NCBI RefSeq assembly: GCF_036365525.1
Contig: NC_090404.1
Span: 8,866,001 to 8,930,000 of the forward strand
Source: Heterodontus francisci
Taxonomy: Eukaryota
DNA: 64,000 nucleotides
Direction: 5' to 3'
A model generated the notes under the pieces. That model was not told where the DNA came from and ran no database searches. It saw only the letters and a list, made by a program, of their open reading frames with translations. The translations under genes and the position numbers were made by a program. Below, piece by piece: positions 14,140-55,524 of this stretch (its first letter is position 1; every line of letters begins with the position of its first letter).

Positions 14140-15048
14140 AATTTGCTGATGACACAAAAATGGGCGGTGTAGTTAACCGTGAGGAGGAAAGCCGTGGACT
14201 CCAGAATGATATCAATGGTTTAGTTGAGTGGGCGGAAAAGTGTCAAATGGAATTCAATCCAGAGAAGTGTGAGATGACGCATTTGGGGAGGGGAAATAAA
14301 GCGAGGGAATACACAATAAACGGGAGGATATTGAGAGGGGTAGAAGAAGTGAGAGACGTTGGAGTGCATGTCCACAGGTCCCTGAAGGTGGAGAACAGGT
14401 AGATAGAGTGGTGAAGAAGGCATATGGATTGCTTCCCTTTATTGACCGAGGTATAGAATACAAAAACTGGGATGTGATGCTGGAATTGTATAGAACGCTG
14501 GTTAGGCCACAGTTGCAGTATTGTGTACAGTTCTGGTCACCACATTACAGAAAGGACATAATTGCTCTGGAGAGAGTACAAAAGAGATTTACAAACATGT
14601 TACCAGGGCTTGAAGGTTGCAGCTATGTGGAAAGATTGGATAGGCTAGGGTTGTTTTCCCTGGAACTGAGGAGACTGAGGGGTGACATGAGTGAGGTGTA
14701 TAAAATTATGAAGGGCCTAGACAGAGTAGACAGGAAGGACCTGTTTCCCCTGGCGAGGAGGTCAATTACCAGGGGGCACAGATTTAAGGTGATTGGTAGA
14801 AGGACTAGAGGGGACATGAGGGGAAACATTTCCACCCAGAGGGTGGTGGGTGTCTGGAATTCTCTGCCAGGAATGGTGGTGGAGGCAGAGACCCTCAATT
14901 CTTTTAAAAGGTACTTGGACATATACCTGTAGTGCTATGGACCAGGTGCTGGAAGGTGGGATTAGTTTGGGTGGCTAGCTTAGTCAGCCAGCGCAGACAC
15001 AATGGGCTGAATGGCCTCCTTCTGTGCTGTACATTTTCTATGGTCCTA
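14140..15048 (+). mobile_element. 5'-truncated CR1 LINE
   Basis: FADDTK...VVKKAYG...CVQFWSPHY...RLRGD peptides and CR1 3' UTR. Confidence 0.92.
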
Positions 15049-15067
15049 ACTGCTTTGTTAGAATGAC

Positions 15068-15138
15068 TTGCTGGGCTGGAATTGGACCCGGGGTGCAGCA
15101 GTAAAAGCGCCAAATCCTAATCAACTAGACCACCAAGA
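15068..15138 (-). pseudogene. tRNA-Glu-derived pseudogene (paralog of 8852-8916)
   Basis: Reverse complement TCTTGGTGGTCTAGTTGATTAGGATTTGGCGCTTTTACTGCTGCACCCCGGGTCCAATTCC; flanks 8860-9570 and 15075-15750 are homologous. Confidence 0.7.
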
Positions 15139-16309
15139 AATAACATTTATCAACTTTGTGGACCCATTGTAGATATAATTGATGGTATCGGTGTTAATTT
15201 GGATATCACTTTGACTTTTTGTGCTGGATGTAAATCCATTTCATAACTGCTGCTTACATATTTATTTACATGCGTCTGTGTTCTTCGTTCATTTTTTCGG
15301 TTGAACCTGTCTTCTATCGAAGGTACTTTCTGTCTATTTATTTCTCTCTTACCTTTCATTTACACCTAAATACAGTTAGACACAACACAGATAAACAGAA
15401 ATACATTGAGAAATAACACACACATACACACACATTTATTCAGAATATTCATACTTCCACAATACATTTACAAGCATCACAGTATCAATTATCAATATTT
15501 ATATATTTAGAACCTGATGTATATTATAAAAATAAATGTTCATTTACAGCTGACACACATACAAAGCATCACACTCAGAACATTTGTATGGAAACATGAC
15601 AGCTACATACACACACTCAGTTTATATTGTCACACGGTCCCGTCAGAAGTTGAATAGTTTTTCACAAAGCTGCCCATCCTGTTGAGTATTCAAAGCAGTT
15701 TCCTACTTTCATAGCGGTGATTCTGGGACTCGGTGTGTGGAATTGGATGTGAAAGCTAAAGGAAATTCACCGCTCGTTCAATGTGTTTTAAACAGACAGA
15801 CAGGCAGACAATTGTATCGATTGTTTGCGACCTGATATTGTTTTATTATTGATGATCAATTGGAATTATCTGGAAAGTATCTGGATTTCCAAATCCCTTC
15901 ACATCCACAAGAGTCAGATTGACAAAACGTTCGCTCAGAGAATTAAATATTCTCACCTCTGTCTGTGTAAATAATATTTCGTGCATTGGAACAGCGACTA
16001 CAACTGAAACGTATTTCATTACCTATAAGACGCTTTTGGATGTCCCGAGGCCTTGAGAGGCGCTGCATAAATGAAAATCTCCCCCTTTCTATTATAAAAA
16101 TGCATTTTCGTCATCATGGTTTATCACTCTAGGGGTTACATTTATTGTCCGCCTGTTTCCACGGGGACCAGTAGAGTTTCTTCTTTCCATCTCTTTGGTT
16201 CACTCCGTCTATGGTTGGTGACCAGTCTCCACCTCCTGTGATGTTCTGCATTCCGTCTCCAATCTGCTCAGAGATTCTCTCGCTGAACAGGACACCCGCG
16301 GTCTTTCTT

Positions 16310-16810
16310 TTTATTCTTTCATGGGGTGTGAGAGTCTCTGGCAAGGCCAGCATTTATTGCCCATCCCTAATCGCCCTTGAGAAGGTGGTGGTGAGCTGCC
16401 TTCTTGAACTGCTGCAGTCCATTGGGTGTCGGTGCCTCCACAGTGCTGTTAAGAGAGGAGTTCCAGGATTTTGACCCAGAGACACTGAAGGAATGGCGAT
16501 ATAGTTCGAAGTCAGGATAGTGTATGGTATGAAGGGGAACATGGAGCTGGTGGTCTTCCCATGCGTCTGCTGCCCTTGTACTTCTAGGTGGCAGAGGTGG
16601 CGGGTGTGGAAGGTCCTGGCGAAGAGGACGAGGTGAGTTGCTGCACTGCATCTTGTAGATGATACACACTGCTGCCAGTTTGCACCAGTGGTGGAAGGAG
16701 TGAATGATTAAGGTGCTGGACGGGGTGCTGATCGAGCAGGCTGCTTTGTCCTGGATGGTGTCGAGCTGCTTGAGATGTTTGGAGCTGCACTCATTCAGGA
16801 AAGTAGAGAA
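16310..16810 (-). mobile_element. CR1/L2-group LINE 3' fragment (left arm of inverted duplication)
   Basis: LDTIQDKAAC...HHW...YKM.CS.SPR...SKSWNS...FKKAAHHHLL peptide. Confidence 0.8.
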
Positions 16811-16930
16811 CATGTACCTTGTAGATGGTAGAAAGGAGGGAAACGTGTAATAGGGAAAATGGAGCGGTGTGGAGGGGCTTTGGAGCAAGGAATTCAGCCA
16901 AGCCCAAGTTAGTGCATTCATTAGTCAAGA

Positions 16931-16936
16931 TTTATT
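16931..16936 (-). terminator. PolyA signal AATAAA downstream of the IgH TM exons
   Basis: TTTATT on plus strand, ~365 bp 3' of the putative TM2 acceptor. Confidence 0.4.
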
Positions 16937-17175
16937 AACAATTGCAAAAGGAATATTTTACATAAAAGACTTTTAAAAAATGGATCCAAAATGAATACAA
17001 CAACTGCACATCACATTGAGAACAGAACACATGTGGTCTGAACTGTCTGTAAAAATGTAACAGACCAGTGAGAGAAAAAGAGGGGCTCAATATAAAGTGA
17101 AGAAACAATTGTGAATAAGGAATAGTTACTTATTTACACATGAAGTTTAAACAACGGTGAAACTCGAAGATACAT

Positions 17176-17301
17176 TTACATTATAACCACGATTATCTCA
17201 AACATTTCAAACAGAAAAACGGAAATAATGTTTATGATTTTCCCAACGACAGATTCGGAACCATAAACTGAAGGAATTTTACTTTTACAGTTTTTCGTAA
17301 C
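17176..17301 (-). pseudogene. Putative IgH TM2 / cytoplasmic-tail exon; canonical VK-stop replaced by read-through
   Basis: Strong acceptor TTCTTTTATCCCTCTTTTCCAG|GTT ACG AAA, 144 bp after the TM1 donor. Phase-0 splicing gives VTKNCKSKIPSVYGSES...VVIM*. Confidence 0.5.
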
Positions 17302-17445
17302 CTGGAAAAGAGGGATAAAAGAATGAAACAGAGACTTCGTGATCCAGGAAATTCATCGCAGAGTTTTTTTTCATCTCCGAAACTTTTCGAGATTTGTTAA
17401 ACAGCTTCAGTCAAATTGAAGTGTGAGTGGATTGAATCTTCTCAC

Positions 17446-17573
17446 CTTCACCAGAGTGACGGCAGCACTGTAGAAAATACTCAGGAAGAACAGGATGATG
17501 AATGTGGAAGCGGTTGTCCAGATGTTGCCGCTCTCTTCCTCATTGTCTTCAATCCAGATGTGATCTGAGGAAT
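17446..17573 (-). CDS. IGHM: Immunoglobulin heavy-chain (IgM-like) transmembrane exon TM1, orphan in this window
   Basis: Acceptor TTTCCTCCTCTACATCCCCGTAG, phase-1 exon of 128 nt = (D)SSDHIWIEDNEEESGNIWTTASTFIILFFLSIFYSAAVTLVK, donor GTGAGA. Has the acidic spacer and the membrane-Ig motif W-T-T-x-x-x-F-x-x-L-F-x-L-S-x-x-Y-S-x-x-V-T. Confidence 0.88.
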
Positions 17574-17939
17574 CTACGGGGATGTAGAGGAGGAAATAGA
17601 TTTATATCATTTATTAGTCCAGGATATAAGATTTTTATTTCGCATTCGCAGTTCTCTTCCTTAAGCTATTATTTTGTTCTCTAATTTAATTTTCAATGTA
17701 GGTATTTTAAGTTAATCACTCTCAGTAATCTATTTCTGTTACAAACTCTACAGCTGTTCTTCCTTTATGATCCTCGTGCAGGCCGTGATAAAATATGTCA
17801 GGTTTTTTTTCAGTCGCTGACACTATTTTCTTTTGGATCAATTCGTTCTATCATCAGAGATTGTTATGGTGAGAGATACGGAGATCTCTGAACACATCTT
17901 CAAAATAATTGTTAACGATCAGTAAAACTCCCTCGATAT

Positions 17940-18618
17940 CTCAGCCAGGCAATGACCATAACCAACAAGAGGGAATCTAACCATCTCCCCTTGACGTTCA
18001 ACGACATTACCATCTCTGAATCTCCATCATCAACATCCTGGGAGTTAACATTAACAGGAAAATTAGCTGGAGTAGACAAATGAATACTGTGGATAAAAGA
18101 GCAGGTCAGAGGCTGGGAATTCTACGGCGAATAGCACATCTCCTGACTTCCCAAAGTCTGCCACCATCTACAAGGCACAAGTCAGGACTGTGATGGAATA
18201 CGCTTCACTTTCCCGAATGAATGCAGCTCTAACAAAACTCAAGAAGCTCGACACCATCCACTGGATCAGCACCCCGTCCACCACCTTAAACTTTCATTCT
18301 CTCCACCACTGGCGCACAGTGGCAGCAATGTATACCGTCTACAAGATGCACTGCAGCAGCTCACCTCGTACTCTTCGACAGCACCTTCCAAACCCGCCAC
18401 CTCTGTCCCCTAGAAGTACAAGGGTAGCAGACGCATGGGAACACCACCACCTGCAAGTTCCCCTCCAAGCCACACTCCCTCCTGACCTGGTACTATATCG
18501 CCGTTCCTTCACTGTCACTGGGTCAAAATCCTGGAACTCCCTTCCTAACAGCACAGTGGGTATACCTCACCCACATGGACTGCAGCGGTTCAAGAAGGCA
18601 GCTCACCACCACCTTCTC
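17940..18618 (+). mobile_element. CR1/L2-group LINE 3' part (right arm of inverted duplication; tail resumes at 19625)
   Basis: ORF 18190-18630 is homologous to 16367-16800 in the opposite orientation. Confidence 0.8.
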
Positions 18619-19624
18619 ATAAGAACATAAGAACTAGGAGCAGGAGTAGGCAATTCAGCCCCTCGAGCCTGTTCTGCCATTCAATATGATCATAGCTGAT
18701 CTCATCTTGGCCTCAACTCCACTCTCCTGCTCGTTCTCCATAACCCTTCAACCCATTACTAATTAAAAATCTGTCACTCTCCTCCTTAAATTTACTCAAT
18801 GTCCCGGCATCCACCACACTCTGGGATAGTGAATTCCACAGACTCACGACCCTTTGAGAGAATTAATTTCTTCTCATCTCGGTTTTAAATCTGCTACCCC
18901 TTATCCTAAAACTATGACCTCTCGTTCTACATTGCCCCACCAGAGGAAACATCCTCTCTACGTCTACTTTGTCAATCCCCTTAATCACCTTATATATCTC
19001 AATTAGATCTCCTCTCATTCTTCTAAACTCCAGAGAGTAAAGGCCTAAACTGCTCAATCTCTCTTCATAAGACAAACCCCTCATCTCTGGAATCAATCTA
19101 GTGAACCTCCTCTGAACTGCCTCCAATGCAACCACATCCCTCCTCAAGTAAGGGGACCAAAACTGTACACAATGCTCCAGGTGCGGTCTCACCAATGCCT
19201 TGTACAGTTGCAGCAACACTTCCCTACTTTTAGACTCTATTCCTTTCGCAATAAATGCCAAAATTCCATTTACCTTCCTGATCACCTGCTGCACCTGCAC
19301 ACTAGTTTTCTGCGATTCATGCACGAGGACACCCAGATCCCTCTGCACCGAAAAACTCTGAAGTTTCTCTCCATTTAGATAATAATTTGCCTTTCTATTC
19401 TTCTGACCAAAATGGACAACCTCACACTTATCCACGTTAAACTCCATCTGCCAAATCTTGGCCCATTCACTTAATCTATCCATATCCATTTGTAAATTTC
19501 TTATTTCATTGTTGAAACTTATTATCCCATCTATTTTAGGGTCATCCGCAAATTTTGCTATAGTACCTTCTATCCCTGCATCCAAGTCATTAATATAGAT
19601 TGTAAATAGTTGGCGCCCAAGGAC
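18619..19624 (-). mobile_element. 5'-truncated CR1 LINE nested in the preceding LINE
   Basis: 256-aa RT C-terminal ORF 18863-19633 (FADD); (TTCTTATG)n tail at 18619-18635. Confidence 0.92.
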
Positions 19625-19973
19625 CAAGGACAATTAGGATGGGCAGCAAATGCTGGCCTAACCAGCGATGTCCACATCCCAGAACAGAATACAAACAGAC
19701 TGCGGATTTCCTGTTGAGTGAAGAGAATCTCTGAGCAGATTGGAGACCAAATCCAGAACATCACAGGCGGTGGAGACTGGGCATCAGCCAAAGATGAATT
19801 GAACCAAACAAATGGAAAGAAGAAACTCCATTGGTCTCGGTGGAAGCAGGAGTACAATAGTGTAACCCCTAGCATGATATAGTACATGGAAGAAAATGTT
19901 TTTTATAATAGAAAGGGGGAATCTTATTTATGCGGCACCTTTCACGGCCTCGGGAAATCCAAAATTTAATAAG

Positions 19974-21087
19974 TTTCCTTTCATTGCAGCAGCTTTTTCG
20001 GGAGCAGAGTGCGAGCGAGTGAGCAGCTGGGAAGGTCAGTTTGAAAGTAAACTTAATTTCCTTTTGTTTTTGGCAGAGGCCAGGGGGCTGCTGGGTAAGT
20101 AAAACACTATATATTTGGGTGGTTTAAAATAACTTTCCTTTCATTGCAGCAGCTTTTTCGGGAGCAGAGAGTGCGAGCGAGTGAGCAGCTGGGAAGGTCA
20201 GTTTGAAAGTAAACTTAATTTCCTTTTGTTTTCGGCAGAGGCCAGGGGGCCGCTGGGTAAGTAAAACACTACATATTTGGGTGGTTTAAAATAACTTTCC
20301 TTTCATTGCAGCAGCTTTTTCGGGAGCAGAGTGCGAGCGAGTGAGCAGCTGGGAAGGTCAGTTTGAAAGTAAACTTAATTTCCTTTTGTTTTCGGCGGAG
20401 GCCAGGGGGCTGCTGGGTAAGTAAAACGCTCTTTATTTGGGCGGTTTAAAATAACTTTCCTTTCATTGCAGCAGCTTTTTCGGGAGCAGAGTGCGAGCGA
20501 GTGAGCAGCTGGGAAGGTCAGTTTGAAAGTAAACTTAATTTCCTTTTGTTTTCGGCGGAGGCCAGGGGGCTGCTGGGTAAGTAAAACGCTATATATTTGG
20601 GCGGTTTAAAATAACTTTCCTTTCATTGCAGCAGCTTTTTCGGGAGCAGAGTGCGAGCGAGTGAGCAGCTGGGAAGGTCAGTTTGAAAGTAAACTTAATT
20701 TCCTTTTGTTTTCGGTGGAGGCCAGGGGGCTGCTGGGTAAGTAAAACGCTATATATTTGGGCGGTTTAAAATAACTTTCCTTTCATTGCAGCAGCTTTTT
20801 CGGGAGCAGAGTGCGAGCGAGTGAGCAGCTGGGAAGGTCAGTTTGAAAGTAAACTTAATTTCCTTTTGTTTTCGGCGGAGGCCAGGGGGCTGCTGGGTAA
20901 GTAAAACGCTATATATTTGGGTGGTTTAAAATAACTTTCCTTTCATTGCAGCAGCTTTTTCGGGAGCAGAGTGCGAGCGAGTGAGCAGCTGGGAAGGTCA
21001 GTTTGAAAGTAAACTTAATTTCCTTTTGTTTTCAGCGGAGGCCAGGGGGCTGCTGGGTAAGTAAAACGCTATATATTTGGGCGGTTT
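19974..21087 (+). repeat. Seven ~160-bp tandem monomers forming the CR1 5' UTR
   Basis: Units start at ~19974, 20133, 20294, 20454, 20614, 20774 and 20934; nearly identical. Confidence 0.97.
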
Positions 21088-21264
21088 CTGAACCCGAGAC
21101 ACCACACTTGTAGTGTCTCCCACCCGCCCTCCTCCTCTAACCAAAAAAAAGGACTCGGTGGGGTGTATATAAGGTAAGGCTTTTTCTATTTCTCTGGTTT
21201 TATCGTGATTGGTAAAAACTTTTCATTCCTTTTTCATTTAACTAAGTTAAGCTTAAGATTAAAA

Positions 21265-22212
21265 ATGGCAGGAGATCTCAGACCCGTGTCATGCTCCTCT
21301 TGCTCAATGTGGGAGCTCAGGGACATGGCTGATGTCCCTGACTCATTCACGTGCAGGAAGTGTGTCCAACTGCAGCTCTTGTTAGACCGCATGACGGCTC
21401 TCGAGCTGCGGATGGACTCACTTTGGAGCATGCGCGATGCTGAGGAGGTCGTGGATAGCACGTTTAGTGAATTGGTCACACCGCAGATTAGGATTGCTGA
21501 GGGAGAAAGGGAATGGGTGACCAAAAGGCAGAGAAAGAGCAGGAAGGCAGCGCAGGAGTCCCCTGCGGTCATCTCCCTCCAAAACAAGTATACCGTTTTG
21601 GATACTGTTGAGGGAAATGGCTCACCAGGGGAAGGCAGCAGTAGCCAGGTTCATGGCACCGTGGCTGGCTCTGCTGTTCAGAAGGGCGGGAAAAAGAGTG
21701 GAAGGGCTATAGTCGTAGGGGATTCGATTGTAAGGGGAGTAGATAGGCGGTTCTGTGGCTGAAAACGAGGCTCCCGAATGGTATGTTGCCTCCCAGGTGC
21801 ACGGGTCAGGGATGTCTCAGATCGGCTGCAGAACATTCTAAAGGGGGAGAGTGAACAGCCAGTTGTCGTTGTGCACATAGGCACCAATGATATAGGTAAA
21901 AAACGGGATTAGGTCCTACAAGCAGAGTTTAGGGAGTTAGGAGCCAAGTTAAAAAGCAGGACCTCAGAGGTAGTAATCTCAGGATTGCTACCAGTGCCAC
22001 GTGATAGTCAGAGTAAAAATGAAAGAATAGTCAGGATGAATGCGTAGCTTGAGAGATGGTGCAGGAAGGAGGGGTTCAGATTTTTGGGACATTGGGACCG
22101 GTTCTGGGGGAGGTGGGACTATTACAAATTGGACGGTCTACACCTGGGCCGGACTGGAACCAATGTCCTTGGGGGTGCTTTTGCTAACACTGTTGGGGAG
22201 GGTTTAAACTAA
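21265..22212 (+). pseudogene. CR1 ORF1 (Cys-rich zinc finger / zipper + SGNH-GDSL esterase), three premature stops
   Basis: MAGDLRPVSCSSC...CRKC; IVVGDS, HIGTND and DGLH motifs. Stops at ~21760, ~21910 and ~22045. Final TAA overlaps the ORF2 ATG. Confidence 0.9.
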
Positions 22213-25200
22213 TGTGGCAGGGGGATGGGAACCAATTGAGGAGGTCAGTTGACAGGAAGGAGGTAGTAACAAAAGCCTGTAAGGAACTAGATAATGAAGT
22301 CAGTGTGACTAAGGGGAAGAGCAGGCAGGGAGCAGATGATGAATGTAAAGGGACTGGTGGTCTGAGGTGCATTTGTTTTAATGCAAGAAGTGTAGTAGGT
22401 AAGGCAGATGAACTTAGGGCTTGGATTAGTACCTGGGAGTATGATATTGCTATTACTGAGACTTGGTTAAGGGAAGGGCATGATTGGCAACTAAATATCC
22501 CAGGATATCGATGCTTCAGGCAGGATAGAGAGGGAGGTAAAAGGGGTGGAGGAGTTGCATTACTGGTCAAAGAAGATATCACAGCTGTGCTGAAGGAGGG
22601 CACTATGGAGGACTCGAGCAGTGAGGCAATATGGACAGAACTCAGAAATAGGAAGGGTGCGGTAACAATGTTGGGGCTGTACTACAGGCCTCCCAACAGC
22701 GAGCGTGAGATAGAGGTACAAATATGTAAACAGATTATGGAAAGATGTAGGAGCAACAGGGTGGTGGTGATAGGAGATTTTAATTTTCCCAACATTGACT
22801 GGGATTCACTTAGTGTTAGAGGTCTAGATGGAGCAGAATTTGTAAGGAGCATCCAGGAGGGTTTTCTAGAGCAGTATGTAAATAGTCCAACTCGGGAAGG
22901 GGCCATACTGGACCTGGTGTTGGGGAATGAGCCCGGCCAGGTGTTTCAAGTTTCAGTAGGGGACTACTTTGGGAATAGTGATCACAATTCCGTCAGCTTT
23001 AGAATACTCATGGACAAAGACGAGAGTGGTCCTAAAGGAAGACTGCTAAATTGGGGGAAGGCCAACTATACCAAAATTCGGCAGGAGCTGGAGAATGTAG
23101 ATTGGGAGCAGCTGTTTGAAGGTAAATCCACATTTGATATGTGGGAGGCTTTTAAAGAGAGGTTGATTAGCGTGCAGGAGAGACATGTTCCTGTGAAAAT
23201 GAGGGATAGAAATGACAAGATTAGGGAACCATGGATGACAGGTGAAATTGTGAGACTAGCTAAGAGGAAAAAGGAAGCATACATAAGGTCTAGGCGGCTG
23301 ATGAAAGACGAAGCTTTGAAAGAATATCGGGAATGTCGGACCAATCTGAAACGAGGAATTAAGAGGGCTAAAAGGGGTCATGAAATATCTTTAGCAAACA
23401 GGGTTAAAGAAAATCCCAAAGCCTTTTATTCATATATAAGGAGAAAGAGGGTAACTAGAGAAAGGATTGGCCCACTAAAGGACAAAGGAGGAATGTTATG
23501 CTTGGACTCAGAGAAAATGGGTGAGATTCTAAACGAGTACTTTGCATCGGTATTCACCGAGGAGAGGGACATGACGGATGTTGAGGTTAGGAACAGATGT
23601 TTGAGTACACTAGGTCAAGTCGGCATAAGGAGGGAGGAAGTGTTGGGTATTCTAAAGGGCATTAAGGTGGACAAGTCCCCAGGTCCGGATGGGATCTATC
23701 CCAGGTTACTGTGGGAAGCGAGAGAGGAAATAGCTGGGGCCTTAACAGATATCTTTGCAGCATCCTTAAACACGGGTGAGGTCCCGGAGGACTGGAGAAT
23801 TGCTAATGTTGTCCCCTTGTTTAAGAAGGGTAGCAGGGATAATCCAGGTAATTATAGACCGGTGAGCCTGACGTCAGTGGTAGGGAAGCTGCTGGAGAAG
23901 ATACTGAGGGATAGGATCTATTCCCATTTGGAAGAAAATGGGCTTATCAGTGATAGGCAACATGGTTTTGTGCAGGGAAGGTCATGTCTTACCAACTTAA
24001 TAGAATTCTTTGAGGAAGTGACAAAGTTGATTGATGAGGGAAGGGCTGTCGATGTCATATACATGGACTTCAGTCAGGTGTTTGATAAGGTTCCCCATGG
24101 TAGGCTGATGGAGAAAGTGAAGGCGCATGGGATCCAGGGTGTACTAGCTAGATGGATAAAGAACTGGCTGGGCAACAGGAGACAGAGAGTAGCAGTAGAA
24201 GGGAGTTTCTCAAAATGGAGACGTGTGACCAGTGGTGTTCCACAGGGATCCGTGCTGGGACCACTGTTGTTTGTGATATACATTAATGATTTGGAGGAAA
24301 GTATAGGTGGACTGATTAGCAAGTTTGCAGACGACAGTAAGATTGGTGGAGTAGCAGATAGTGAAGGGGACTGTCAGAGAATACAGCAGAATATAGATAG
24401 ACTGGAGAGTTGGGCAGAGAAATGGCAGATGGAGTTCAATCAGGGCAAATGCGAGGTGATGCGTTTTGGAAGAGCCAATTCAAGAGTGAACTATACAGTA
24501 AATGGAAAAGTCCTGGGGAAAATTGATGTCCAGAGAGATTTGGGTGTTCAGGTCCACTGTTCCCTGAAGGTGGCAACGCAGGTAAATAGAGTGGTCAAGA
24601 AGGCATACGGCATGCTTTCCTTCATCGGACGGGGTATTGAGTACAAGAGTTGGCAGGTCATGTTACAGTTGTATAGGACTTTGGTTCGGCCACATTTGGA
24701 ATACTGCGTGCAGTTCTGGTCGCCACATTACCAAAAGGATGTAGATGCTTTGGAGAGGGTGCAGAGGAGGTTCACCAGGATGTTGCCTGGTATGGAGGGC
24801 GCTAGCTATGAAGAGAGGTTGAGTAGATTAGGATTATTTTCATTGAAAAGACGGAGGTTGAGGGGGGACCTGATTGAGGTGTACAAAATCATGAGAGGTA
24901 TAGACAGGGTGGATAGCAAGAAGCTTTTTCCCAGAGTGGGGGATTCAATTACTAGAGGACACGAGTTCAAAGTGAAAGAGGAAAAGTTTAGGGGGGATAT
25001 GCGTGGAAAGTTCTTTACGCAGAGGGTGGTGGGTGCCTGGAACGCGTTGCCAGCGGAGGTGGTAGATGCGGGCACGATGGCGTCTTTTAAGATGTATCTA
25101 GACAGATACATGAATGGGCAGGAAGCAAAGAGATACAGACCCTTAGAAAATAGGCGTCATGTTTCGATAGAGGATCTGGATCGGCGCAGGCTTGGAGGGC

Positions 25201-25271
25201 CGAAGGGCCTGTTCCTGTGCTGTAATTTTCTTTGTTCTTTGTTCAAAAGTGTCTTATGGCTAAGGAAGTAA
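22212..25271 (+). CDS. CR1 ORF2: APE endonuclease + reverse transcriptase, uninterrupted (1019 aa, reads past its likely natural stop)
   Basis: FNARS, ITETW, GDFN, SDH endonuclease motifs; SPGPDGI, NYRPVSL, GVPQGSVLGP, FADD RT motifs. TCG at 25164 corresponds to TAG in the 11.2-kb copy. Confidence 0.95.
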   Translation: MWQGDGNQLRRSVDRKEVVTKACKELDNEVSVTKGKSRQGADDECKGTGGLRCICFNARSVVGKADELRAWISTWEYDIAITETWLREGHDWQLNIPGYRCFRQDREGGKRGGGVALLVKEDITAVLKEGTMEDSSSEAIWTELRNRKGAVTMLGLYYRPPNSEREIEVQICKQIMERCRSNRVVVIGDFNFPNIDWDSLSVRGLDGAEFVRSIQEGFLEQYVNSPTREGAILDLVLGNEPGQVFQVSVGDYFGNSDHNSVSFRILMDKDESGPKGRLLNWGKANYTKIRQELENVDWEQLFEGKSTFDMWEAFKERLISVQERHVPVKMRDRNDKIREPWMTGEIVRLAKRKKEAYIRSRRLMKDEALKEYRECRTNLKRGIKRAKRGHEISLANRVKENPKAFYSYIRRKRVTRERIGPLKDKGGMLCLDSEKMGEILNEYFASVFTEERDMTDVEVRNRCLSTLGQVGIRREEVLGILKGIKVDKSPGPDGIYPRLLWEAREEIAGALTDIFAASLNTGEVPEDWRIANVVPLFKKGSRDNPGNYRPVSLTSVVGKLLEKILRDRIYSHLEENGLISDRQHGFVQGRSCLTNLIEFFEEVTKLIDEGRAVDVIYMDFSQVFDKVPHGRLMEKVKAHGIQGVLARWIKNWLGNRRQRVAVEGSFSKWRRVTSGVPQGSVLGPLLFVIYINDLEESIGGLISKFADDSKIGGVADSEGDCQRIQQNIDRLESWAEKWQMEFNQGKCEVMRFGRANSRVNYTVNGKVLGKIDVQRDLGVQVHCSLKVATQVNRVVKKAYGMLSFIGRGIEYKSWQVMLQLYRTLVRPHLEYCVQFWSPHYQKDVDALERVQRRFTRMLPGMEGASYEERLSRLGLFSLKRRRLRGDLIEVYKIMRGIDRVDSKKLFPRVGDSITRGHEFKVKEEKFRGDMRGKFFTQRVVGAWNALPAEVVDAGTMASFKMYLDRYMNGQEAKRYRPLENRRHVSIEDLDRRRLGGPKGLFLCCNFLCSLFKSVLWLRK

Positions 25272-25736
25272 TTTTCAGGTGTAGTCGCTGTTCCAACGCA
25301 GGAAATATTATTTACACAGTGAGGTGAGAATATTTAATACTCTGAGGGAACGTTTTGTCAATCTGACTCTTGTGGATGTGAAGGGATTTGGAAATCCAGA
25401 TACTTTCCAGATAATTCCAATTTATCATCAATAATAAAAACAATGTCCGATCACAAAAAATCGATACAATTGTCTGCCTGTCTGTCTGTTTATAACACAT
25501 TGAAATACCGTTCCGAACGGAAGAGTTGTTATCCTTCTTCTTCAGACTATACAGTGACGTAGGATTAATGAAAAACATTGATTCCGTGCCGTGACACCTG
25601 TAATTTACTCTATCTGTAAATACACCGCCGTCTGCGGTATTTCCACACAAAAGTATTGCCTGTAATCTCCAGCTGTCACCTGTGAAACCACTAAACTGAC
25701 GACTCGGCACCGTTTGGCCGAAGATGAGTTGCTGGA

Positions 25737-27643: not shown

Positions 27644-28104
27644 AGATATTGTGCATCTGGATGTGCTCTTTGACTCACTGTGTCCCCACGGCACAGTGAT
27701 ATAGACCGGCGTCCTGGGCCTCGGTGCCATCTGTAGAGATGGTGTTGGACTTCTTTATTCTGTCCAAGGACAGTGTGTAGCGTCCAGTAGTCTCCTGGTA
27801 AATGGAGCTGATAAATGTCGGTGCCCCTGTCAGTGTTTGTCTGTACCAGCCTACTCTATCTCCAGCAGCAATGGAGAGCCGGCAGTCCAGTTTAACCCGT
27901 TCCCCTTCCCGCGAAACCACCTGCTCAGGGTGTGAGCTCTGATCCTCACACTGAACGGCTGTAAACAAAACAAAATCACTCAACAACCACAAGGTATTAA
28001 GAAATTGGTGAAGCAAAGTCTCTGATCAGATAAATAAACTCACACAACATCAACAGCACCAGAACTCCAACAGGAACCCGGTTTTTGTGGAGGTTTCTGT
28101 TCAT
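27644..28104 (-). CDS. TCR alpha/delta-type V segment, apparently intact (leader 28104-28044, V exon 27958-27683, 23-RSS 27682-27644)
   Basis: Leader MNRNLHKNRVPVGVLVLLML/GT-AG intron; V has Cys, WYRQ, DAGLYHCA; RSS CACAGTG-23-ACAATATCT (weak nonamer). Confidence 0.85.
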
Positions 28105-35548: not shown

Positions 35549-36464
35549 CAGATCACAGTGTTGCTTTTCTGGATCAGTCCCCAGGCAGTGACTTAATTGC
35601 GGTTTCCCCCAAAACGGAGGATATTTTGTAATGAATAGAAGTTCAATAGTTGAAATCAACTTATTTCAATGGATTGGGAAAGTACATCCGACAATAATCA
35701 TCACAAACAGTTAAACATCCACATATCGAAGGATTGGCTTTTGATACTAACCAGTGCGCATGACAAGTGAATGGAGGGTGTGGAAGACGGGGAAAGGATA
35801 TTAAAATGTGAATGAGAGACACACCCTGAGATCTGATTTCTGAAGCCAGTAACTGTACCGTTAGTGGAAATCGATCCGAAAGGACCGAAAGACAAACCGA
35901 AACCGCATTTAATTTGTTTGTTTTTTTGCTTCACTCCTTTTTCTATTCTGTGAAAGTTTTTCATGTCCTGCTGGTGTTGGGTTCTTGTTAATGAGAATCC
36001 GCCCTACACCTCACCCTGGAGGTTTTGACCCCGCTCCCCGCGCTCTGTTTCCGCCACTTTCAGTCCATGAGGTGCAAATTGTTAAAAAATAAACCGATAC
36101 GCCGCTCTCTGTTTTCTCTCATCGCAAATCCAATATCTGAGGATTATGGATGTTTAATTCAATCATGACAAGCACAATGAATGCCGAAATTCAACAGGAA
36201 GATTTTAAACAGCATTTCAGGTGCAAAACAGGGAAGAAGACGGTGTTGGAAACGCTATTTAAGTTACAGCCGGAGTTTATTCTTTATTTCTGTTCAGTTG
36301 TTTGTTCAGTACAGCAGAGATCATCGTTTTAATAAGACGGATCTCTAAATCATTCCGGAAATACTGATCGGTGAGGGAAATCTCACTGCAGTCACGGTTA
36401 CCAGTGTGCTGATGGTGAATATACTGGAATTTGAGAGGAGGAATTGACGCCAGAATAAACCAAC

Positions 36465-37728
36465 CCCATTAACAATCCCATGTATCCGGTTACAATAACC
36501 AGACAAGGGTTTCAGTCCCCGCCCCACGACTCGAACAGCGGAACCATTCACCATATAAGGACAGTGACTGGAGCCCAGCTCGGGGTGTTTCCATTCACTG
36601 ACAGCCCGCTCACCAGCTACCGCTCTCACAGCACCACTGGGGACACAAGGAAGTGAGGTGAGAGAATCCTGAGACACGACAGCAGATTATTGAGGGTGGG
36701 GATTAGAACGGGTGTCTTCAAATATCCAACGGAGCGGACAGCGACAATGCGGCTACTCAGCATCTGGGTTGTGTGGGGAGCATTTCTGACAGGTAATTGT
36801 GGATTAAACACATTTAATCTTTTCTCTCATTTCACAAACAAGCTTTAAATCTGAATTTTAAACAGTCGTCAGTCTGATCTTTTCCTGTTTTAACATGTTT
36901 TTCAGATCGGAGTCATGGAGATTCTGTCACTCAGCTCCTGCCCTCAGATGTTAAGACAGAAGGAGAAGCTGTGACTTTAAGCTGTACCTATGATACTACA
37001 ATGAGCAGCTATACATTATACTGGTATCGACAACACCCAGATACACAGCCCGAGTTTATACTGAGGATATTCTCGAGCGGTGCTGAATATAAAGCAGATT
37101 TTGCTAAAACCCGTTTCTCTGCTGAGCTCCAGAAAGCGACTAAATTCACCGGTTTAACCATCTCGGGTCTGCAGCTGACTGACTCTGCCGTGTATTACTG
37201 CGCTCTCAGCCTCACAGTGATGGAAAGCTGTCTCACCCCTGTACAAAAACTGCCTTTGGACTGTGGGTGGGAGCTTCTGTCTGTTGTCGGTTGTGTAGAA
37301 TCGCGGGCAGATGCAGCCACAATGTGCAGCGCGCTGTCAGGCGCTCAAATACACACCGAGAGGAAACCAAATTAACCTCGGATCAAACTGTCACCCAACT
37401 GTTTCCAGGAGCGGCCGAGAAAACAAACTGCAGAATCCAATCAGACAGACAGATACATCACAGAATCATATTTGAAGACACCCGTTCTAAACCCCACCCC
37501 CAATAATCTGCTGTCGTGTCTCAGGATTCTCTCACCTCACTCCCTTGTGTCCCCAGTGGTGCTGTGAGACCGGTAGGTGGTGAGCTGTCTGTCAGTGAAT
37601 AGAAACACCCCGAGCTGGGTTCCAGTCAGAGACCTGATCGAGGAATGGTTCCGCTTTAAGGGGCCATGGGGTGGGAATGAAAACGTCGTCCGTTAATTGT
37701 CACCAGCAAGCTAAGGATTGTTAATGGT
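36465..37728. repeat. ~260-bp inverted repeat (36465-36725 / 37468-37728) flanking a V gene
   Basis: CCCAGCTCGGGGTGTTT...GAACGGGTGTCTTCAAATAT and its reverse complement downstream of the RSS. Confidence 0.9.
36747..37251 (+). CDS. TCR alpha/delta-type V segment, intact (leader 36747-36792, V exon 36906-37212, 23-RSS 37213-37251)
   Basis: MRLLSIWVVWGAFLT leader; DSVTQ...TLSCTY...LYWYRQHP...DSAVYYCALS; CACAGTG-23-ACAAAAACT. Confidence 0.95.
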
Positions 37729-38524
37729 GACAGAAAATATTCTAGCATTAAGGCGACACCCTGAAGTACAATGGACACTGGGGGATCTTTGCGCTTGGGG
37801 CCTGTTTTAAAGGTCACTGTCGTCACCTTATGAAATCAGTTCATTGTGTATTAACTGTCACTGAGTCAGAAACACACTCTGATCAAATAAACCCTGTGAA
37901 CAGGCGCGGTCAAACATTCCGGGAAACTGACAGGGGAGATGGGGAAAGAGCTGTTCAATATTGCAGGCAGGCACGGAAAGGGCAGCAAAGGACAAACAGT
38001 AAATTACAACGTCACAAATGGATTTGTCAATTTCAGTTTTAGTGTCGGGCTTTGGAGAAAGATCAGGAGAATGAAACTGATTGGATAGCTCTTTCAAAGA
38101 GCCGAGACGATGGGACGAATGGCCTCCTTCTGTGCTGTCAGATTCCATGATTCATTGAATTTCAATTGCAATAGTCAAACTTTCGTAATTATCCCCCGGA
38201 AGTTGCGATTGGTGATGTTAGCATATGGAAGAATAACAGTGACGGTATTTAACAATGTCATGGTGAAATCGTAAACATAAAATGGCATCTTAGCTTATTA
38301 AGCATTTTCGTAGCAACTTGACTAAAGTGACTTGACTCTGGTTTCAGATTAAGATTGTGGATTCCACTCAACTTCAGAAGCTGGATATGTTAACCAGGTT
38401 TCTAATCGGTGCAGTGCTGAAAGGACACGATCTTTTCAGGGATAATCTGAACCAGGTGTTTAAGTGCAACAAGTGTTGTCCAATCGCAGAATTGCATCTA
38501 AAATTGTGTTCTGAGTTTTGCGGA

Positions 38525-47130: not shown

Positions 47131-49810
47131 GAGTTGGTGGGGAGGTGGTGGAGGCAGAAATCAGGTAACTATAGGCCAGTTAGCTTGACGTCTGTCATGG
47201 GGGAGGAGTTAAAATCAATCATTAAGGAGGCTACAGCTGGGTACTTAGAAAAACTCGAGGGAATCAGGAATAGTCAGCATGGTTTGTGAAAGGAAGTCAT
47301 ATTTAACCACTTTATTGGAGTTCTTTTAATGAGTAATATGCGCTGTGGATAAAGGGGCGCCGGTTGACATTCTGTACTTGGATTTCCAGAAGGCATTTGA
47401 CATGGTGCCACATGAAAGGTTATTACACAAAATACGAGCTCTTGCTCTAAGGGGAAACGTATTCTCATGGATAGAAGATTGGCTGGCTGGCTGGCAGAAA
47501 GAGAGATTATTCATAAATAGATCCTTTTCCGATTGGCAGGATGGGACGAGTATATCACTAACTTAATTGAGTTTTTTGAGGAAGTAACAAGAAGGATTGA
47601 TGAGGGTAGTGCAGTGGATGTGGTCTATATGGATTTTAGTAAGGCATTTAACAAGATCCCACATGGCAGACTGGTCAGTAAAATGAAAGCCCATGGGATA
47701 CAGCGGAATGTGGCAGGCTGGATCCAGAATTGGCTGAGGGACAGGAAACAAAGGGTAGTACTCGACGGATATTTCTCTGAATGGAAAGCTGTTTCCAGTG
47801 GTGTTCCACAGGACTCAGTGTCGGGTCCCTTGCTGTTTTTGGTATATATTAATGATTTGGACTTAAATGTGGGCGGCATGATTGGGAAATTTTCTGATGA
47901 CACAAAAATTGGCCGTGTAGTTGATAGTGAAGAGGATAGCTGTAGACTCCAGGATGATATCAATGGTTTGGCTGAATGGGTGAAAAAGTGGCAAATGGAA
48001 TTCAATCAGAAAAGTGTGAGCTAATGCATTTGGGGAGGGCAAATAAAGCGAGGAAGTACACAATAAACGGGAAGATATTGAGAGGGGTAGAAGAAGTGTA
48101 TACCTTGGTGGGAATGTCCACGGTCCCTGAAGGTGGCAGGACAGGTAGATAGTGTGGTGAAGAAGGCATATGGAATGCTTTCCTTTATTGGCCGAGGTAT
48201 AGAATTCAAAAGCAGGGATGTAATGCTGGCACTGTATAAAATGCTGGTTAGGCCACAGTTGGAGTATTGTGTACAGTTCTGGTCACCACATTACAGGAAG
48301 GACATAATTGCTCTGGAGAGAGTACAGAGGAGATTTACAAGAATGAACAGGACTCGAAAGTTGCAACTTTGAAGAAAGATTGGATAGTCTAGGGTTGTTT
48401 TTTCTGGAACTGAGGAGGCTGAGGGGTGACTTAATTGAGGTGTACAAAATTATGAGGGGCCTAGATAGACAGGAAGGACCTGTTTCCCCTGGAGGATAGG
48501 TTGACTAGCAGGGGGATCAGATTTAAAGTGATTGGTAGAAGGATTGGGATGGACATGAGGAAAAACGTTTTTTCACCCAGAGGTGGTGGGTGTCTGGAAT
48601 TCACTGCCAGGAACGTTGGTGGAGGTGGAAACCCTCAATTCTTTTAAAAGGTAGCTGGACATGCACCTGAGGTGCTGTAACCTGCAAAGGTACGGACCTG
48701 GTGCTGGAAGGTAGGATTAGATTGGGTGGCTAGTTATTTCGGCCGGCACAGAGGCGACAAAATGTTTCCATGGTTCTATGGAGTGGAGTCCCACAGAGGT
48801 CTGTGCTGGGGCCTTAGGTTTTTACAATTTATATCAACGACATAGACGAGGGGAGCGATGGCATGGTAGCAAAATTTACTGATGACACAAAGATAGGCAG
48901 GAAATTATGTTGTGAAGAGGGCAAAAGGAGCTTGCAGACCGATATAGATAGGCAGAGTGAGTGAGCAAAAATATGGCAGTGTATAATGTGGGAAAATGTG
49001 AATTTGTTCACTTGGGAGGAAGAATAAAAGAGCAGAGTATTACTTAAACGGAGAAAGACAGCAGAATTCCGAGGTGCAGAGGGATCTAGGTGTTCTAGTG
49101 CATGAGCCACAAAAAGTTAGCGTGCAGATACAGCAACGAATAAAGAAGGCGGATGGAGCACTATCCTTTATTATGAGAGGAATTGAAAATAAAAGTATGG
49201 ATGTTATGCTTCAGTTACTTAGGGCATTGGTGAGACTGCATCTCAAATACGGTGTGCACTTTAGGTCTCCTTATTTAAGGAAAGATGTAAATGCGTTGGA
49301 GGCGGTTCAGAGAAGGTTTACCAGATTGATACTTGGAATGAGCGGGTTGTCTTATGAGGAAAGGTTGGACAGACTGGGCTTGTTTTTACTGATATTTGGA
49401 AGAGTGAGGGGAGACTTGATTGAGGTATATAAGATCCTGAACGGTCTTGATAAGGCGGCTGTGGAAAGGATGTTTCCTCTTGTGGGTGAGTCCAGAACGA
49501 AGGGGCACTTTTTTAAAATTAGGGGTCGCCCTTTTAGGACAGAGATGAGGAGAATATTTTTCTCTGAGGGTTGTGCGACTTAATTGGAACTCTCTGCTTC
49601 AGAAGGTGGTGGAGGCGGGGTCATTGAATATTTTTTAAGGCGAAGGTAGATAGATTCTTGTTAGGTAAGGGAATCACAGGTTATCAGGGGGAGATGGAAG
49701 TGTGGAATTCGAAACACAAATTGATCAGCCATGATCTTATTGAATGCTGCAGCAGGCTCGAAGGGCTGAATGGCCCACTTCTGCTCCTAATTCGAATGTT
49801 CAAATGTATG
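47131..49810 (+). mobile_element. Mosaic of degenerate CR1 RT fragments (47550-48780 nested in another CR1)
   Basis: LDFQKAFD, DFSKAF, GVPQ, FSDD peptides with stops; two 3' ends. Confidence 0.9.
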
Positions 49811-50694
49811 TTTCTATGTTGGTTGACGCTTTTCCTACATTACACGAGTGACTATACCTCAAAGGAACCTCTGACTATAAAGCGATTTGGGATGTCCTGG
49901 TGTCGTGAAAGGCCCTATAAGAATGCAAGTCTTTCTTTATTTATTTGATTTATGGAACTCATTTCTCTAACATGCCAAACAGGGATTGAAACTCAACAGA
50001 TCAATGTGGGCAATCTAATCCCATAATCACAACAATCCTGTACCTCTCTGTATGGCATAGTTGTGTTATCTGTCACAGGCAGCAGGGGGCTTGAGACTGC
50101 AGTTCTGGACTGCTCTGGCAAGCTGCATCGCGGGGCTTCACTTAAATACTTCAGGGGTTCAAGTTATTTCGCCCAGAGCAGTGTCCCAGAGATCATAGGT
50201 GGGCCGCATGGTCCCTGAGTCACTGGCTGTGGGTTGTCTGAATAAACAACAGGTTCAAAACAAAAGCCTGTAGATTTCATACCGTCTCTGAGCACTGTCT
50301 GAAAGACATTCCCACAATGGACTGATACACAGGAGGGAACCAACACGGAATGGAGTAATGAGCATGCGCAGTTTCACTGATAGGCATCACCCCGAGAAAC
50401 TAATAGCAAACCATCGGTCCGGTGCAGTGAAAACTCAAACACAGTGATGGAGCGCCATCAAGTGATGATGAGAGGGAACTGACAGCCACTTTGTCCCAAT
50501 CCTGCGACAAGATTATACTGTTTACTGATTACTATTACTGCTGTTTTATTATTACTGTGGTTATGATTACAGTTATTGTTAGTGTTACTGTTGCCATTTT
50601 ATTGTTTGGCTTTAGATACAATTGCTGTGTTATATTCATTCTCAGGATGTTCCGGATTTACAGACTCTCCTTGCTGTTTTACACTGTCTGTATG

Positions 50695-51021
50695 GATGCG
50701 GTCGGTGAAGAGGAGGTGATGCCTCTCCCTCCGCGGGTGGTTGTCAGTGAAGCGAAAATTGTCTCCATGAATTGCTCCATTACCTTCCGTTTACTGTTCT
50801 ACACTTTTACAGACAGCAACCTTATCAGCCCCTCCAGCATCTGGGGATGGCCACAAGCTCACTGATCAACACGGGAGGATCACTACTTCAATCGGGGGAG
50901 ACTGCAAACGCAGTGCACTGACTGTCAGAAAGGAGCGAGTGACAGACACCGCCACCTTTCTCTGAGCTGTGAGGCCACAGTGTAACAAACAAATTACAAA
51001 TTCAGAGTCGGTACAGGAACC
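50695..51021 (+). pseudogene. TCR V pseudogene (family of the 31013 V)
   Basis: EEEV...VSMNCS, frameshift, DTATFL*AVR; CACAGTG with 30-bp spacer (ACAAATT duplicated) and ACAGGAACC; acceptor mutated, no leader seen. Confidence 0.82.
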
Positions 51022-51496
51022 CACAGAGTGGGAGAGCCGCTCTTCTGTCTTTGAACTATTGATACTGTTGGAACAATCGATATCTATAGTGAATGAAATC
51101 AAAAATAGTAAATAGAGAGAGAGTGACACTGAGAGAGAGAGAGATTTAAAGAAAGTGAGAAATAGAGTTGGAAACGCAAAGAGAGAAAATAGTAGTAAAA
51201 GCATGAAAGGAAGAATGAGAGAGAGAAAAACACTTTCCTAATCCGTGTAGAGCAAATTAGGAAAATGAGAGGACTGAAATAAAAGAAACAACCAGAATGA
51301 AACACAAAGCTACAAGGTAAGAGAAAGCTATGAAGAAATGGATTCGGAAATTAAGTAATAGGCACTTTCCTTTCAACTCACTCATTTCCCTTTCTCCTAT
51401 TTCCACAGTTGAATTGTCTGAAAAGCGTCTCCTCGTAAATGGCCGCTGGAAACTGACCAATAGATCAAATCACACTTTACTCTGCCCATTAACTGG

Positions 51497-53235
51497 ACAT
51501 AGGAACATAAGAGGAGGAGCAGGCCATTCAGCCCATCAAGCCTGATCCGCAATTCAATATGATCATGGCTCATCATTCACTTCAAACCCTTTTCCCCACC
51601 ATATATATCTGTCAATCTCTACGTCCAACATACTCAATGACTGAGCTTCCACAGTCCTCTGGGGTAGAGAATTCCAAAGATTCACAACCCTCTCCTCATC
51701 TTTGTTTTGTTTTAGTTTTAGAGATACAGCCCTGAAACAGGCCCTTCAGCCCACCGAGTCTGTGCCGACCATCAACCACCCATTTATACTAATCCTACAC
51801 TAATCCCATATTCCTACCACATCCCCACCTGTCCCTATATTCCCCTACCACCTACCTATACTAGGGGCAATTTATAAATGGCCAATTTACCTACCAACCT
51901 GCAAGTCTTTTGGCTTGTGGGAGGAAACCGGAGCACCCGAAGGAAACACACGCAGACACAGGGAGAACTTGCAAACTCCACACAGGCAGTACACAGAATT
52001 GAACCCGGGTCGCTGGAGCTGTGAGGCTGCAGTGCTAACCACTGCGCCACTGTGCCGCCCATCTCTGTCCTAAGTGTCTTCCCCCTTATTTTGAAATTGT
52101 GTCCCCTGGTTCTAGACTCCTCAACCAGGGGAAACATCTTACCTGCATCTACCCTGCCTATCCCTTTCAGTATTTTGTAGGTTTCAATGACATCACCTCT
52201 CATTCTTCGAAACTCTAGAGAATACAGGCCCAGTTTCCCCAATTGCTCTTCATAGGACAGTCCCGCCATCCTGGGAACAAGTCTGGTGAACCTTCATTGC
52301 ACTCCATCTATGGCAATAATATTCTTCCGACGGTAAGGGGACCAAAACTGCACATAGTTCTCCAAATGCAGTCTAACCAAGGTTCTGTACAATTGAAGCA
52401 AAGCTTCACTTCTCCTGTGCTCAAATCCTCTTGTGATAAAGGCCAACATACCGTTAGCCTTCTTAATTACTTGCTGCACCTGCGTGTTCGCTTTCAGTGA
52501 ATTATTGACAAGGACACCCAGGTCCCTTTGTACATCTACACTTTCTAATCTCTTATCATTGAACAAATACTCTGGACCTTTATTCCCAGGCCAAAATGGA
52601 TAACCTCACATTTTTCCACATTATTTTCCATTTGCAACGTTCTTGCCCACACACTACGTTTGTCCAAATCCCCTTGAAGACGCTTTTCATTTTCCTCACA
52701 ACACACATTCCCACCTAATTTTGTGTCATCTGCGAACTTGGAAATATTACATTTGGTCCCCACATCCAAATCATTGACATATATTGTGAACAGCTGGGGC
52801 CCAAATACTGATCCTTGTGGTACCCCACTAGTCACAGACTGCCAATGCGAGTGTGATCCGTTTATTCCCACTCTCTGCTTTCTGCCTATTAACAATCCTG
52901 AATCCATGCCAGTATATAACCTCCTATCCCATGTGCTTTAATTTTGCTAACCACCTCCTGTGGGGACTTTATCAAAAGCCTTCTGAAAATCCAAGTATAC
53001 TACGTCCACTTTGTATCAATTCTGTCAGGAACATCCTCAAAAGCTCCAACAGTTTGGTCAAACATGATTTCCCATTCATAAATCCATGTTGACTATGCCC
53101 AATCAGATCATTATTATCCAAGTGTCCATTTATTACATTCTTAAGAATAGATTCTAAAATTTGCCCTACTGCTGATGCTGGGTTAACAGGTCTGTAGTTC
53201 CCTGTTTTCTCTCTCCCTCCCTTCGTAAATAGTCT
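51497..53235 (-). mobile_element. Degenerate CR1 LINE interrupted by a SINE
   Basis: GNYRPV, SQHGF, GVPQGSV, FADD and 3' peptides. Confidence 0.9.
51702..52059 (-). mobile_element. Young HE1-like tRNA-derived SINE with CATCT TSD
   Basis: GGCGGCACAGTGGCGCAGTGGTTAGC...GGGTTCAATTC head, A-rich tail, CATCT on both sides. Confidence 0.9.
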
Positions 53236-54537
53236 CACTGGGGCAAAAAAGAAACGCTCAACAACAACAGGTGAGGTCCACTTGCAGAATTAGATTAGTT
53301 TGCGAATTAAATTCGCATCTATAATTAAAAACAAGCTGTATAAATACACCTGTGGAACCTGAACTGACTTTGTGTCTTTTGATGTCCTTTCTGTGTCTGT
53401 TCTTTCTCATCGCCTGTCTCCACGTTTTGCCCATCATAATTTAAATTTCGTTCTTCCAGTTTTTAATTCAACAATATAAAATCTGCTTCTGCTCCGCATA
53501 TTAATTTATAACAGATCCAATCCAGTTTCCCATAACCAGGAACTCGAAATAGGTCAGTGAATAAATACAGCATTGCTGAGACACTTTTCACCAGCATATA
53601 AACACTTCTCAGAAGATCCACCAGAGGGCGTCCGATCCATTTGTGGATCAAACCCCAGCCAGTGAGCGAAACCGAGTCCACGTTGGAATAAATAGAACAA
53701 TAGGTGAAATCAACATACCTCCATGGGATGGGAAGATATATCAGGGCAATAACCATCACATGTAACCATCCATCTATCGAAGGATTGACTTCTGACGCTC
53801 AAAACCGAGAAGGATAAGTGAGTGGAAGGTGTGGAACATGGCGAAAGCATATTAAAATGTGAATGACAGACACACCCTGAGATCTGAATTCTGAAGTTAC
53901 TCACTATACCCTTAGTGGAGATCGGTGTTAAAGGAGCGAAAGACAAACCGAAACCGCCCGGATGTTGTTTCTTTTTCTGCTCCTTTTTTAATCTGGGTGA
54001 AAGTTATAAGGACAGTTTTTCATGTCCTGCTGGTGTTGGGTTCTTGTTATGAGAATCCGTCCTGCACCTCACCCTGGAGGTTTTGAACCCGCTCCCCGCG
54101 CTCTGCTCCCGCCACTTTCTTCCCATGAGAGGCAAATTGCTAATAGAAAAGCATCGATTCGCCGCTCCTTCAATTTTCTCTCATCACAAATCCAAAATCT
54201 GAAGATTATACATGTCTAATTTAATCATTATGGACACAGAGAATGTCAGAATTCAACAGAAAGACTTTAAACAACATGTCAAATGCAAATTAGGGAAGAG
54301 GACAGTGTTGGAAACGCTGTTTAAATTACAGCGAGAGTTTATTCTTTATTTCTGTTCAGTTGTTTATTCAGTAACAGTTTTATCGTTCTAATATGACAGA
54401 TCTATAAATCACTCTGGCAAAATACAGAATCATTGTTAGTTCACGAGTTAACTGATCGGTGAGGGAATGTACACTGGAGTCACGGTTACCAGTGTGCTGA
54501 TGGTGAAGTAACGGGAATTTGAGAGGAAGAATTGAGA

Positions 54538-55207: not shown

Positions 55208-55524
55208 GTCACCACGCCAGAATAAACCAACCCCATGAACAATCCCATGTTTCCTGTGACAATGACCAGACAAGGGTTTCAGTCCCCGCCCCACGTCTCT
55301 AACAGCGGAACCATTCCCCATATAAGGACAGTGACTGTCGCCCAGCTCGGGGTGTTTCCGTTCACTGACAGCCAGCTCACCACCTACCGCTCTCACAGCA
55401 CCACTGGGGACACAAGGAAGTGAGGTGAGAGAATCCTGAGACACGACAGCAGATTATTGAGGGTGGGGATTAGAACGGGTGTCTTCAAATATCCAACTCC
55501 CCTTTTACAGAGTGGACAGCGACA

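Follow-up and report, generated by a model that had tools for sequence, protein, structure and literature searches.

How did an immunoglobulin transmembrane (TM) exon come to lie by itself beside an array of TCR-type V segments, and is it still in use? An initial annotation of the 64-kb stretch of shark DNA analyzed here (the window) had offered two answers: what is left of an IgH cluster adjoining TCR alpha/delta V genes, or a route to chimeric receptors in which a TCR-type V domain is Ig-anchored. We find that the exon probably belongs to a truncated, dead IgM gene end that an inverted duplication and TE insertions left behind in situ. This relic of ∼1–1.4 kb would comprise a mu TM1 and a damaged TM2 with the TM1-TM2 intron between them, followed by a 3′ UTR with its poly(A) signal, and most likely it does nothing.

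Sequence and translation reproduce the coordinates, splice sites and peptide with which the exon had been described. It runs on the minus strand from 17573 to 17446 and translates as SSDHIWIEDNEEESGNIWTTASTFIILFFLSIFYSAAVTLVK. Its 128 nt are made up of 2 nt of a split codon and 42 codons, which places the acceptor in phase 1; the exon ends in phase 0. The acceptor AG (17575–17574) follows a pyrimidine-rich tract, and the donor, GTGAGA from 17445, comes directly after the ..K codon. The features of a mu-type TM1 are all present, namely a W-TTAST-F...LS.FYS..VTL.K membrane segment behind an acidic spacer, a phase-1 AG acceptor and a GT donor right after the ..K codon. Local alignment with shark and other vertebrate mu chains reveals that every conserved position of the membrane segment is kept and that no residue is aberrant. 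Phase 1 is a general property of Ig and TCR exons; that this acceptor would fit J or C donors, as had been pointed out, is true but not particular to this exon.

A phmmer search of the peptide against all PDB chains returned the TM of human membrane IgM as the best match (E 1.2e-8; five IgM B-cell-receptor entries), with IgG1 far weaker in the same search (E 6.5e-4). Among 1.84 billion representative proteins, 29 match at E < 1e-3, headed by shark Ig heavy chains (E 1e-11). The closest, at 88% identity, is AAB20992, a Heterodontus TM peptide of 43 residues labeled “immunoglobulin heavy chain”, also the sole protein returned by a separate homologous-protein search; Chiloscyllium punctatum chains come next, the best at 78% (a bamboo-shark mu chain with four CH domains). 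So near a match with a horn-shark peptide points to a shark resembling Heterodontus as the source. The bamboo-shark comparator P0002 has four C domains and can be aligned over its full length with human membrane mu (E 6e-77). In a tblastn search of the 64 kb with Ig heavy chains, TM1 was found at E 5e-16. The suggestion of an Ig-TM signature near shark IgM TM1 is borne out by the human IgM match and by the shark mu chains (78–88%), and comparison of the peptide with shark Ig TM exons, which the initial annotation had proposed, gives Ig TM matches with the mu class best. Judged by these sequence matches, the exon is a genuine mu-type Ig TM1. An IgW or IgNAR TM is ruled out because the best matches are mu chains, and the E-values rule out a chance ORF. 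The TM1 core pattern has no exact match in the metagenome contigs scanned.

Features of the locus, in order of position within the window
Feature	Position	Strand	Description
Inverted duplication, left arm	15777–16804		Part repeat element, part unique DNA; 81–91% to right arm
TM2 candidate and 3′ UTR	16931–17301	−	Reads VTKNCKS..., 41 codons; AATAAA at 16936–16931
TM1-TM2 intron	17302–17445	−	GTGAGA donor, strong acceptor cttttatccctcttttccag
Ig mu-type TM1 exon	17446–17573	−	128 nt, stop-free, 42 intact codons, phase-1 start; from sequence, translation, and PDB, protein and tblastn matches
CH4-TM1 intron remnant upstream of TM1	17574–17954	−	Pyrimidine tract and AG; no coding relic, no CH match
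Right arm, inner piece	18207–18619		Inverted copy of 16378–16804, 83%
LINE fragment in right arm	18620–19624	−	RT remnant ORF 18866–19633, weak RVT_1; copies at 49.4, 57.3 and 60.9 kb
Right arm, middle piece	19625–19964		Inverted copy of 16034–16379, 81%
LINE insertion in right arm	19965–25243	+	Open 1027-codon endonuclease and reverse transcriptase ORF, 22188–25268
Right arm, outer piece	25244–25504		Inverted copy of 15777–16038, 91%
Nearest same-strand upstream V gene	27644–28104	−	Leader exon, V-set exon (..YHCAVG; V-set 2.5e-8), CACAGTG-23-ACAATATCT RSS; first V-array member

Little else of an IgM gene could be located. A six-frame tblastn search of the 64 kb with nine Ig heavy chains, shark mu P0002 among them, found no CH1–CH4 at E ≤ 10; apart from TM1, only V-set exons of the neighboring array were matched. 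A functional minicluster has Cmu1–Cmu4 upstream on the same strand, and these are absent from the 64 kb; it also has VH, D and JH with RSSs, and neither VH nor JH is detectable by tblastn in the window. The shark VH query P0009 shares only 26–32% identity with V segments of the window, which indicates that none of them is an IgH-type VH, and these low-identity matches are accounted for by TCR alpha/delta-type V-set exons. An RSS scan between 15 and 27 kb detected neither an RSS nor a J. The earlier statement that no recognizable VH, JH or intact CH lies upstream is confirmed by tblastn over the window, and the CH-domain search that had been advocated, run within these 64 kb, gave no CH match. 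Of the IgM gene, nothing but the 3′ end is present in the window. At most ∼630 bp of the former CH4-TM1 intron remain before TM1; by contig depth in public runs the stretch ahead of TM1 is low-depth and non-repeat to ∼17757, and repeat depth rises from 17758. The P0009 query itself (Chiloscyllium punctatum GCC37862) is a 276-aa gene model that joins VH-JH-CH1 directly to a mu TM and is either a truncated IgM relic or an annotation artefact.

Downstream of TM1, the second acceptor and the AATAAA reported initially are both present. The acceptor is strong (pyrimidine tract cttttatccctcttttccAG and AG at 17303–17302) and the only good one for TM2, and the AATAAA is the only one before the next repeat element. 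All canonical chains retrieved end in ...K plus VK, TM2 of a functional IgM contributing a two-residue VK tail and a stop. The frame behind the 17302 acceptor reads VTKNCKSK... and is not a canonical VK-stop, and no canonical TM2 (AG, then GTN-AAR-stop) is found within 5 kb downstream of TM1. The predicted tail after TM1 is hydrophobic, a read-through of the former UTR. TM1 and the TM2 candidate were searched separately, and the local alignment displayed TM1 beside the first 12 codons of the candidate. We take this non-canonical TM2 to be damaged. Since the TM1-TM2 intron is still present, a processed pseudogene is ruled out.

V-set segments with leader exons and 23-bp RSSs occur in both orientations from 27.6 to 56 kb. 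They display the features of a TCR V array (leader, WYRQ and YxCA motifs, RSS with 23-bp spacer, no adjacent J-C), and for the two segments checked the best single-domain PDB matches are TCR alpha/delta chains, TRAV21/DV12 in the case of the nearest V (27644–28104). Motifs, RSS type and PDB matches together make an array of the alpha/delta class likely, rather than of another V class. A homologous-protein search with the nearest V returned nothing, and one with a second V yielded Ig-like proteins without names from sharks, chimaera and teleosts. TCR-type V segments are indeed the nearest same-strand upstream genes, but the distance from TM1 is ∼10.1 kb and not ∼9 kb as first given; ∼6.3 kb of it is later LINE insertion, and before these insertions TM1 and V would have been ∼3.8 kb apart.

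Further duplications and repeats were noted in the window. A direct segmental duplication of 5.4 kb (47135–52539 and 58597–64000, 98.6%) lies in the V array and reaches the window end. An older V-bearing cassette is duplicated at 35626–38454 and 53683–57243 (79–90%), which makes the V segments at ∼37.0 and ∼55.8 kb paralogous. Downstream of TM1, on the side opposite the V array, a minus-strand ORF of 384 open codons (1463–2614) encodes a C2H2 zinc-finger array with 11 Pfam fingers. Positions 6636–7769 hold ∼1.1 kb of low-complexity repeat with strong GC and AT skew, coding-like for Ser/Leu/Pro on the minus or Arg/Glu on the plus strand, and probably a degenerate microsatellite. Rfam gave no matches and ARAGORN no tRNA gene in the window.

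Self-comparison of the window revealed that the orphan exon is located between two inverted arms. The spacer of 1402 bp (16805–18206) takes in TM1 and the TM2 candidate along with the intron and the AATAAA. In public runs the left arm has very high repeat depth at 16182–16772 and none at 15788–16181. As the arms consist partly of repeat and partly of unique DNA, they represent a segmental inverted duplication and not two independent TE insertions. The right arm is interrupted by two LINE sequences; the domains of the longer ORF are Exo_endo_phos (2.7e-14) and RVT_1 (1.1e-34). Its uninterrupted 1027 codons mark a possibly young or active element, and related RT sequence is present in many decayed copies across the window. 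The arm divergence and the two LINE insertions indicate that the break upstream of TM1 is old and real.

We compared positions 15000–20900 at 90% likeness with Logan contigs, and contigs only, of four public runs from three organisms; that these runs are RNA is a guess. Of the words sampled from 16900–17700, the indexed runs each contain 0.13 at most, and no run is recorded as RNA. Identity is 97–99% in all contigs over TM1, and each of them reads G at 17479 against A in the window, a synonymous difference (AGT/AGC, Ser). The base of this copy is thus found in no contig of the four runs, which as contigs drop rare variants. At 17474, most contigs of two organisms have G and encode Ser (TCC), where the window encodes Phe. 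Phe (LSIFYS) is also what every other vertebrate mu chain in the comparison has at this position, the orphan copy having kept the ancestral residue.

The longest contig (728 nt) ends in TM1; on the upstream side, beyond 17574, it no longer resembles the window, which is the appearance expected of a paralogue's mRNA with CH4 spliced to TM1. A 143-nt contig covers 17288–17402 unspliced at ∼95%, so that the intron is common to another copy. In a 570-nt contig, TM1 is followed by 65 unaligned bases, by 17296–17109 at 85% and by 197 more bases. From coordinates only, the end of this contig would fall near 16912, ∼20 nt past the AATAAA, like an mRNA 3′ end. If it is an mRNA, expressed copies may tentatively be credited with ∼62 additional bases directly behind the start of TM2, again by coordinates only, and the shorter sequence here would then explain the missing K-stop.

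Compared with the 570-nt contig, the window has 1 difference in 119 positions of TM1 and 29 in 188 of the 3′ UTR. Were both stretches of the contig derived from a single paralogue, a relic in free drift from the time of divergence would be expected to have ∼9 differences in TM1 (roughly half the UTR divergence). The excess conservation of TM1 in this comparison, a weak one in a multi-copy family, possibly reflects gene conversion, constraint or the mixing of family members in one contig. Contigs of a run from another organism differ about equally in exon (4 of 131) and intron (6 of 115), as expected when a relic in drift is set beside a functional copy. The contigs give no sign that this copy is transcribed, and contigs cannot establish silence.

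We infer that a complete IgM minicluster once stood in this place, amid interleaved IgH clusters and TCR alpha/delta V genes, that it decayed in the order of events given below, and that what remains is silent. A rearrangement would have placed an inverted copy of the downstream flank ahead of TM1 and, in the same event, removed or separated V, D, J and Cmu1–4 upstream. LINE elements would later have inserted into the right arm. The VK-stop of TM2 would already have been lost, and TM1 may still be open and canonical because it is short and the relic little diverged or because of occasional gene conversion from the many IgM paralogues. The proposal of an IgH-cluster remnant by TCR alpha/delta V genes is supported by the mu-type exon, the loss of the upstream IgM exons, a TM2 lacking VK-stop, and bounds set by the inverted duplication and TEs. 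Points against a dead relic are the fully intact TM1 and the good splice sites on both sides. That an orphan TM1 is actively held intact, either by selection, as an alternative anchor on TCR-type V or distant IgM transcripts, or by repeated gene conversion, in which case it would serve the region's IgM TM exons as a store of sequence, seems very doubtful to us.

Decay in place has to be weighed against an origin elsewhere. In this alternative, which we regard as unlikely, no IgM cluster ever existed at the site and a 1.1–1.4-kb piece was imported from an IgM gene, either captured at a double-strand break in the center of a pre-existing palindrome or carried by 5′ transduction with a repeat element past the poly(A) site. 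The Ig-derived part is limited to the palindrome spacer, and the right-arm repeat extends ∼250 bp further inward (17955–18206) than that of the left arm, as if the spacer had replaced part of the latter. A repeat element of the same orientation starts ∼65–100 bp behind the inferred poly(A) site, and the intron of another copy (∼95%) is closer than the arms are to each other. However, the piece retains the TM1-TM2 intron and so was not a processed transcript, neither a target-site duplication nor a poly(A) tail could be found, and IgM genes are common in this chromosomal region, so that decay in place needs no extra event (PMC12227049).

The remaining possibilities are that the exon is in use or that the locus is misassembled. 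Splicing of distant upstream exons into 17573, from an IgM constant gene beyond the window or from a rearranged TCR-type VJ with a phase-1 J donor, is quite improbable. The open frame with canonical residues, the good acceptor, donor, second acceptor and AATAAA, the phase 1 that fits Ig/TCR J and C donors, and a TM1 far better conserved than the 3′ UTR relative to one contig would be in keeping with use, the product being an Ig-anchored chain with an unusual 41-residue tail. Yet V segments are the only possible partners within 46 kb upstream on the same strand, and V segments end in RSSs, not in splice donors; the supposed intron would include 6.3 kb of LINE insertions and an inverted arm, and the tail reads like former UTR. 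We know of no precedent for a V-J-TM chain without a C domain. The earlier idea of a route to chimeric TCR-V/Ig-anchored receptors finds no support, there being no J, RSS or donor-bearing exon between the V array and TM1, nor a contig in the four runs with the 17479 base of this copy. As for misassembly, a fold-back or collapsed-repeat misjoin could have put an IgM 3′ end among TCR V genes, and the exon does lie between inverted repeats, palindromes being a known source of long-read chimeras. Artefactual fold-backs are near-perfect, whereas these arms are only 81–91% identical and differ by two TE insertions. The window contains no N, and a like mixed IgM/TCR-V layout is found in four other elasmobranch assemblies (PMC12227049); we consider an artefact extremely improbable.

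Comparison of the truncated IgM end with functional shark IgM miniclusters (Heterodontus AAB20992; Chiloscyllium GCC19654) reveals the same acidic spacer and WTTASTFI..LSIFYSAAVTLVK membrane segment, phase-1 acceptor, GT donor after ..VK, short intron, second acceptor and poly(A) signal. It differs from them in having no Cmu1–4, V, D or J in cis, no VK-stop in TM2 and no sign of transcription in contigs. Its genomic neighborhood and mixed Ig/TCR theme recall the shark Ig/TCR chimeras (IgHV-TCR delta trans-rearrangement, NAR-TCR, TAILV). In these, V domains are exchanged through RAG recombination and the TCR constant region and TM are kept; to our knowledge an Ig TM exon is part of none of the known shark chimeras, and there is no indication of such use here. 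If the exon did splice to TCR-type V(D)J transcripts, the result would be an Ig/TCR hybrid of a new kind; none of our findings points in that direction.

Truncated C-gene relics occur in mammals. In nurse shark, three pseudogene Ig-mu clusters are described (PMC5192425). Like Ig pseudogene clusters and orphons, the relic would be what remains of a duplicated Ig gene that no longer functions, with parts preserved by chance, but it is unusually small, consists of membrane exons only and is located within an inverted duplication. Flajnik et al. (2025, PMC12227049) found IgM, IgW and IgNAR clusters in linkage with TCR alpha/delta in four elasmobranchs, and V exons of TCR type interspersed among the IgH clusters; their account covers whole V(D)JC clusters and makes no mention of pseudogenes. 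The interleaving of IgH with TCR alpha/delta V genes is thus already published. Our locus shares with this complex the Ig heavy-chain material beside TCR alpha/delta-type V segments on one chromosome, but contributes a 3′ fragment only, in contrast to the whole clusters. It adds modestly to what is known of the ways in which shark IgH miniclusters may break up inside a region common with TCR alpha/delta, here by an inverted duplication and LINE insertions that would have left a membrane-exon fragment behind, and it leaves the published picture unchanged.
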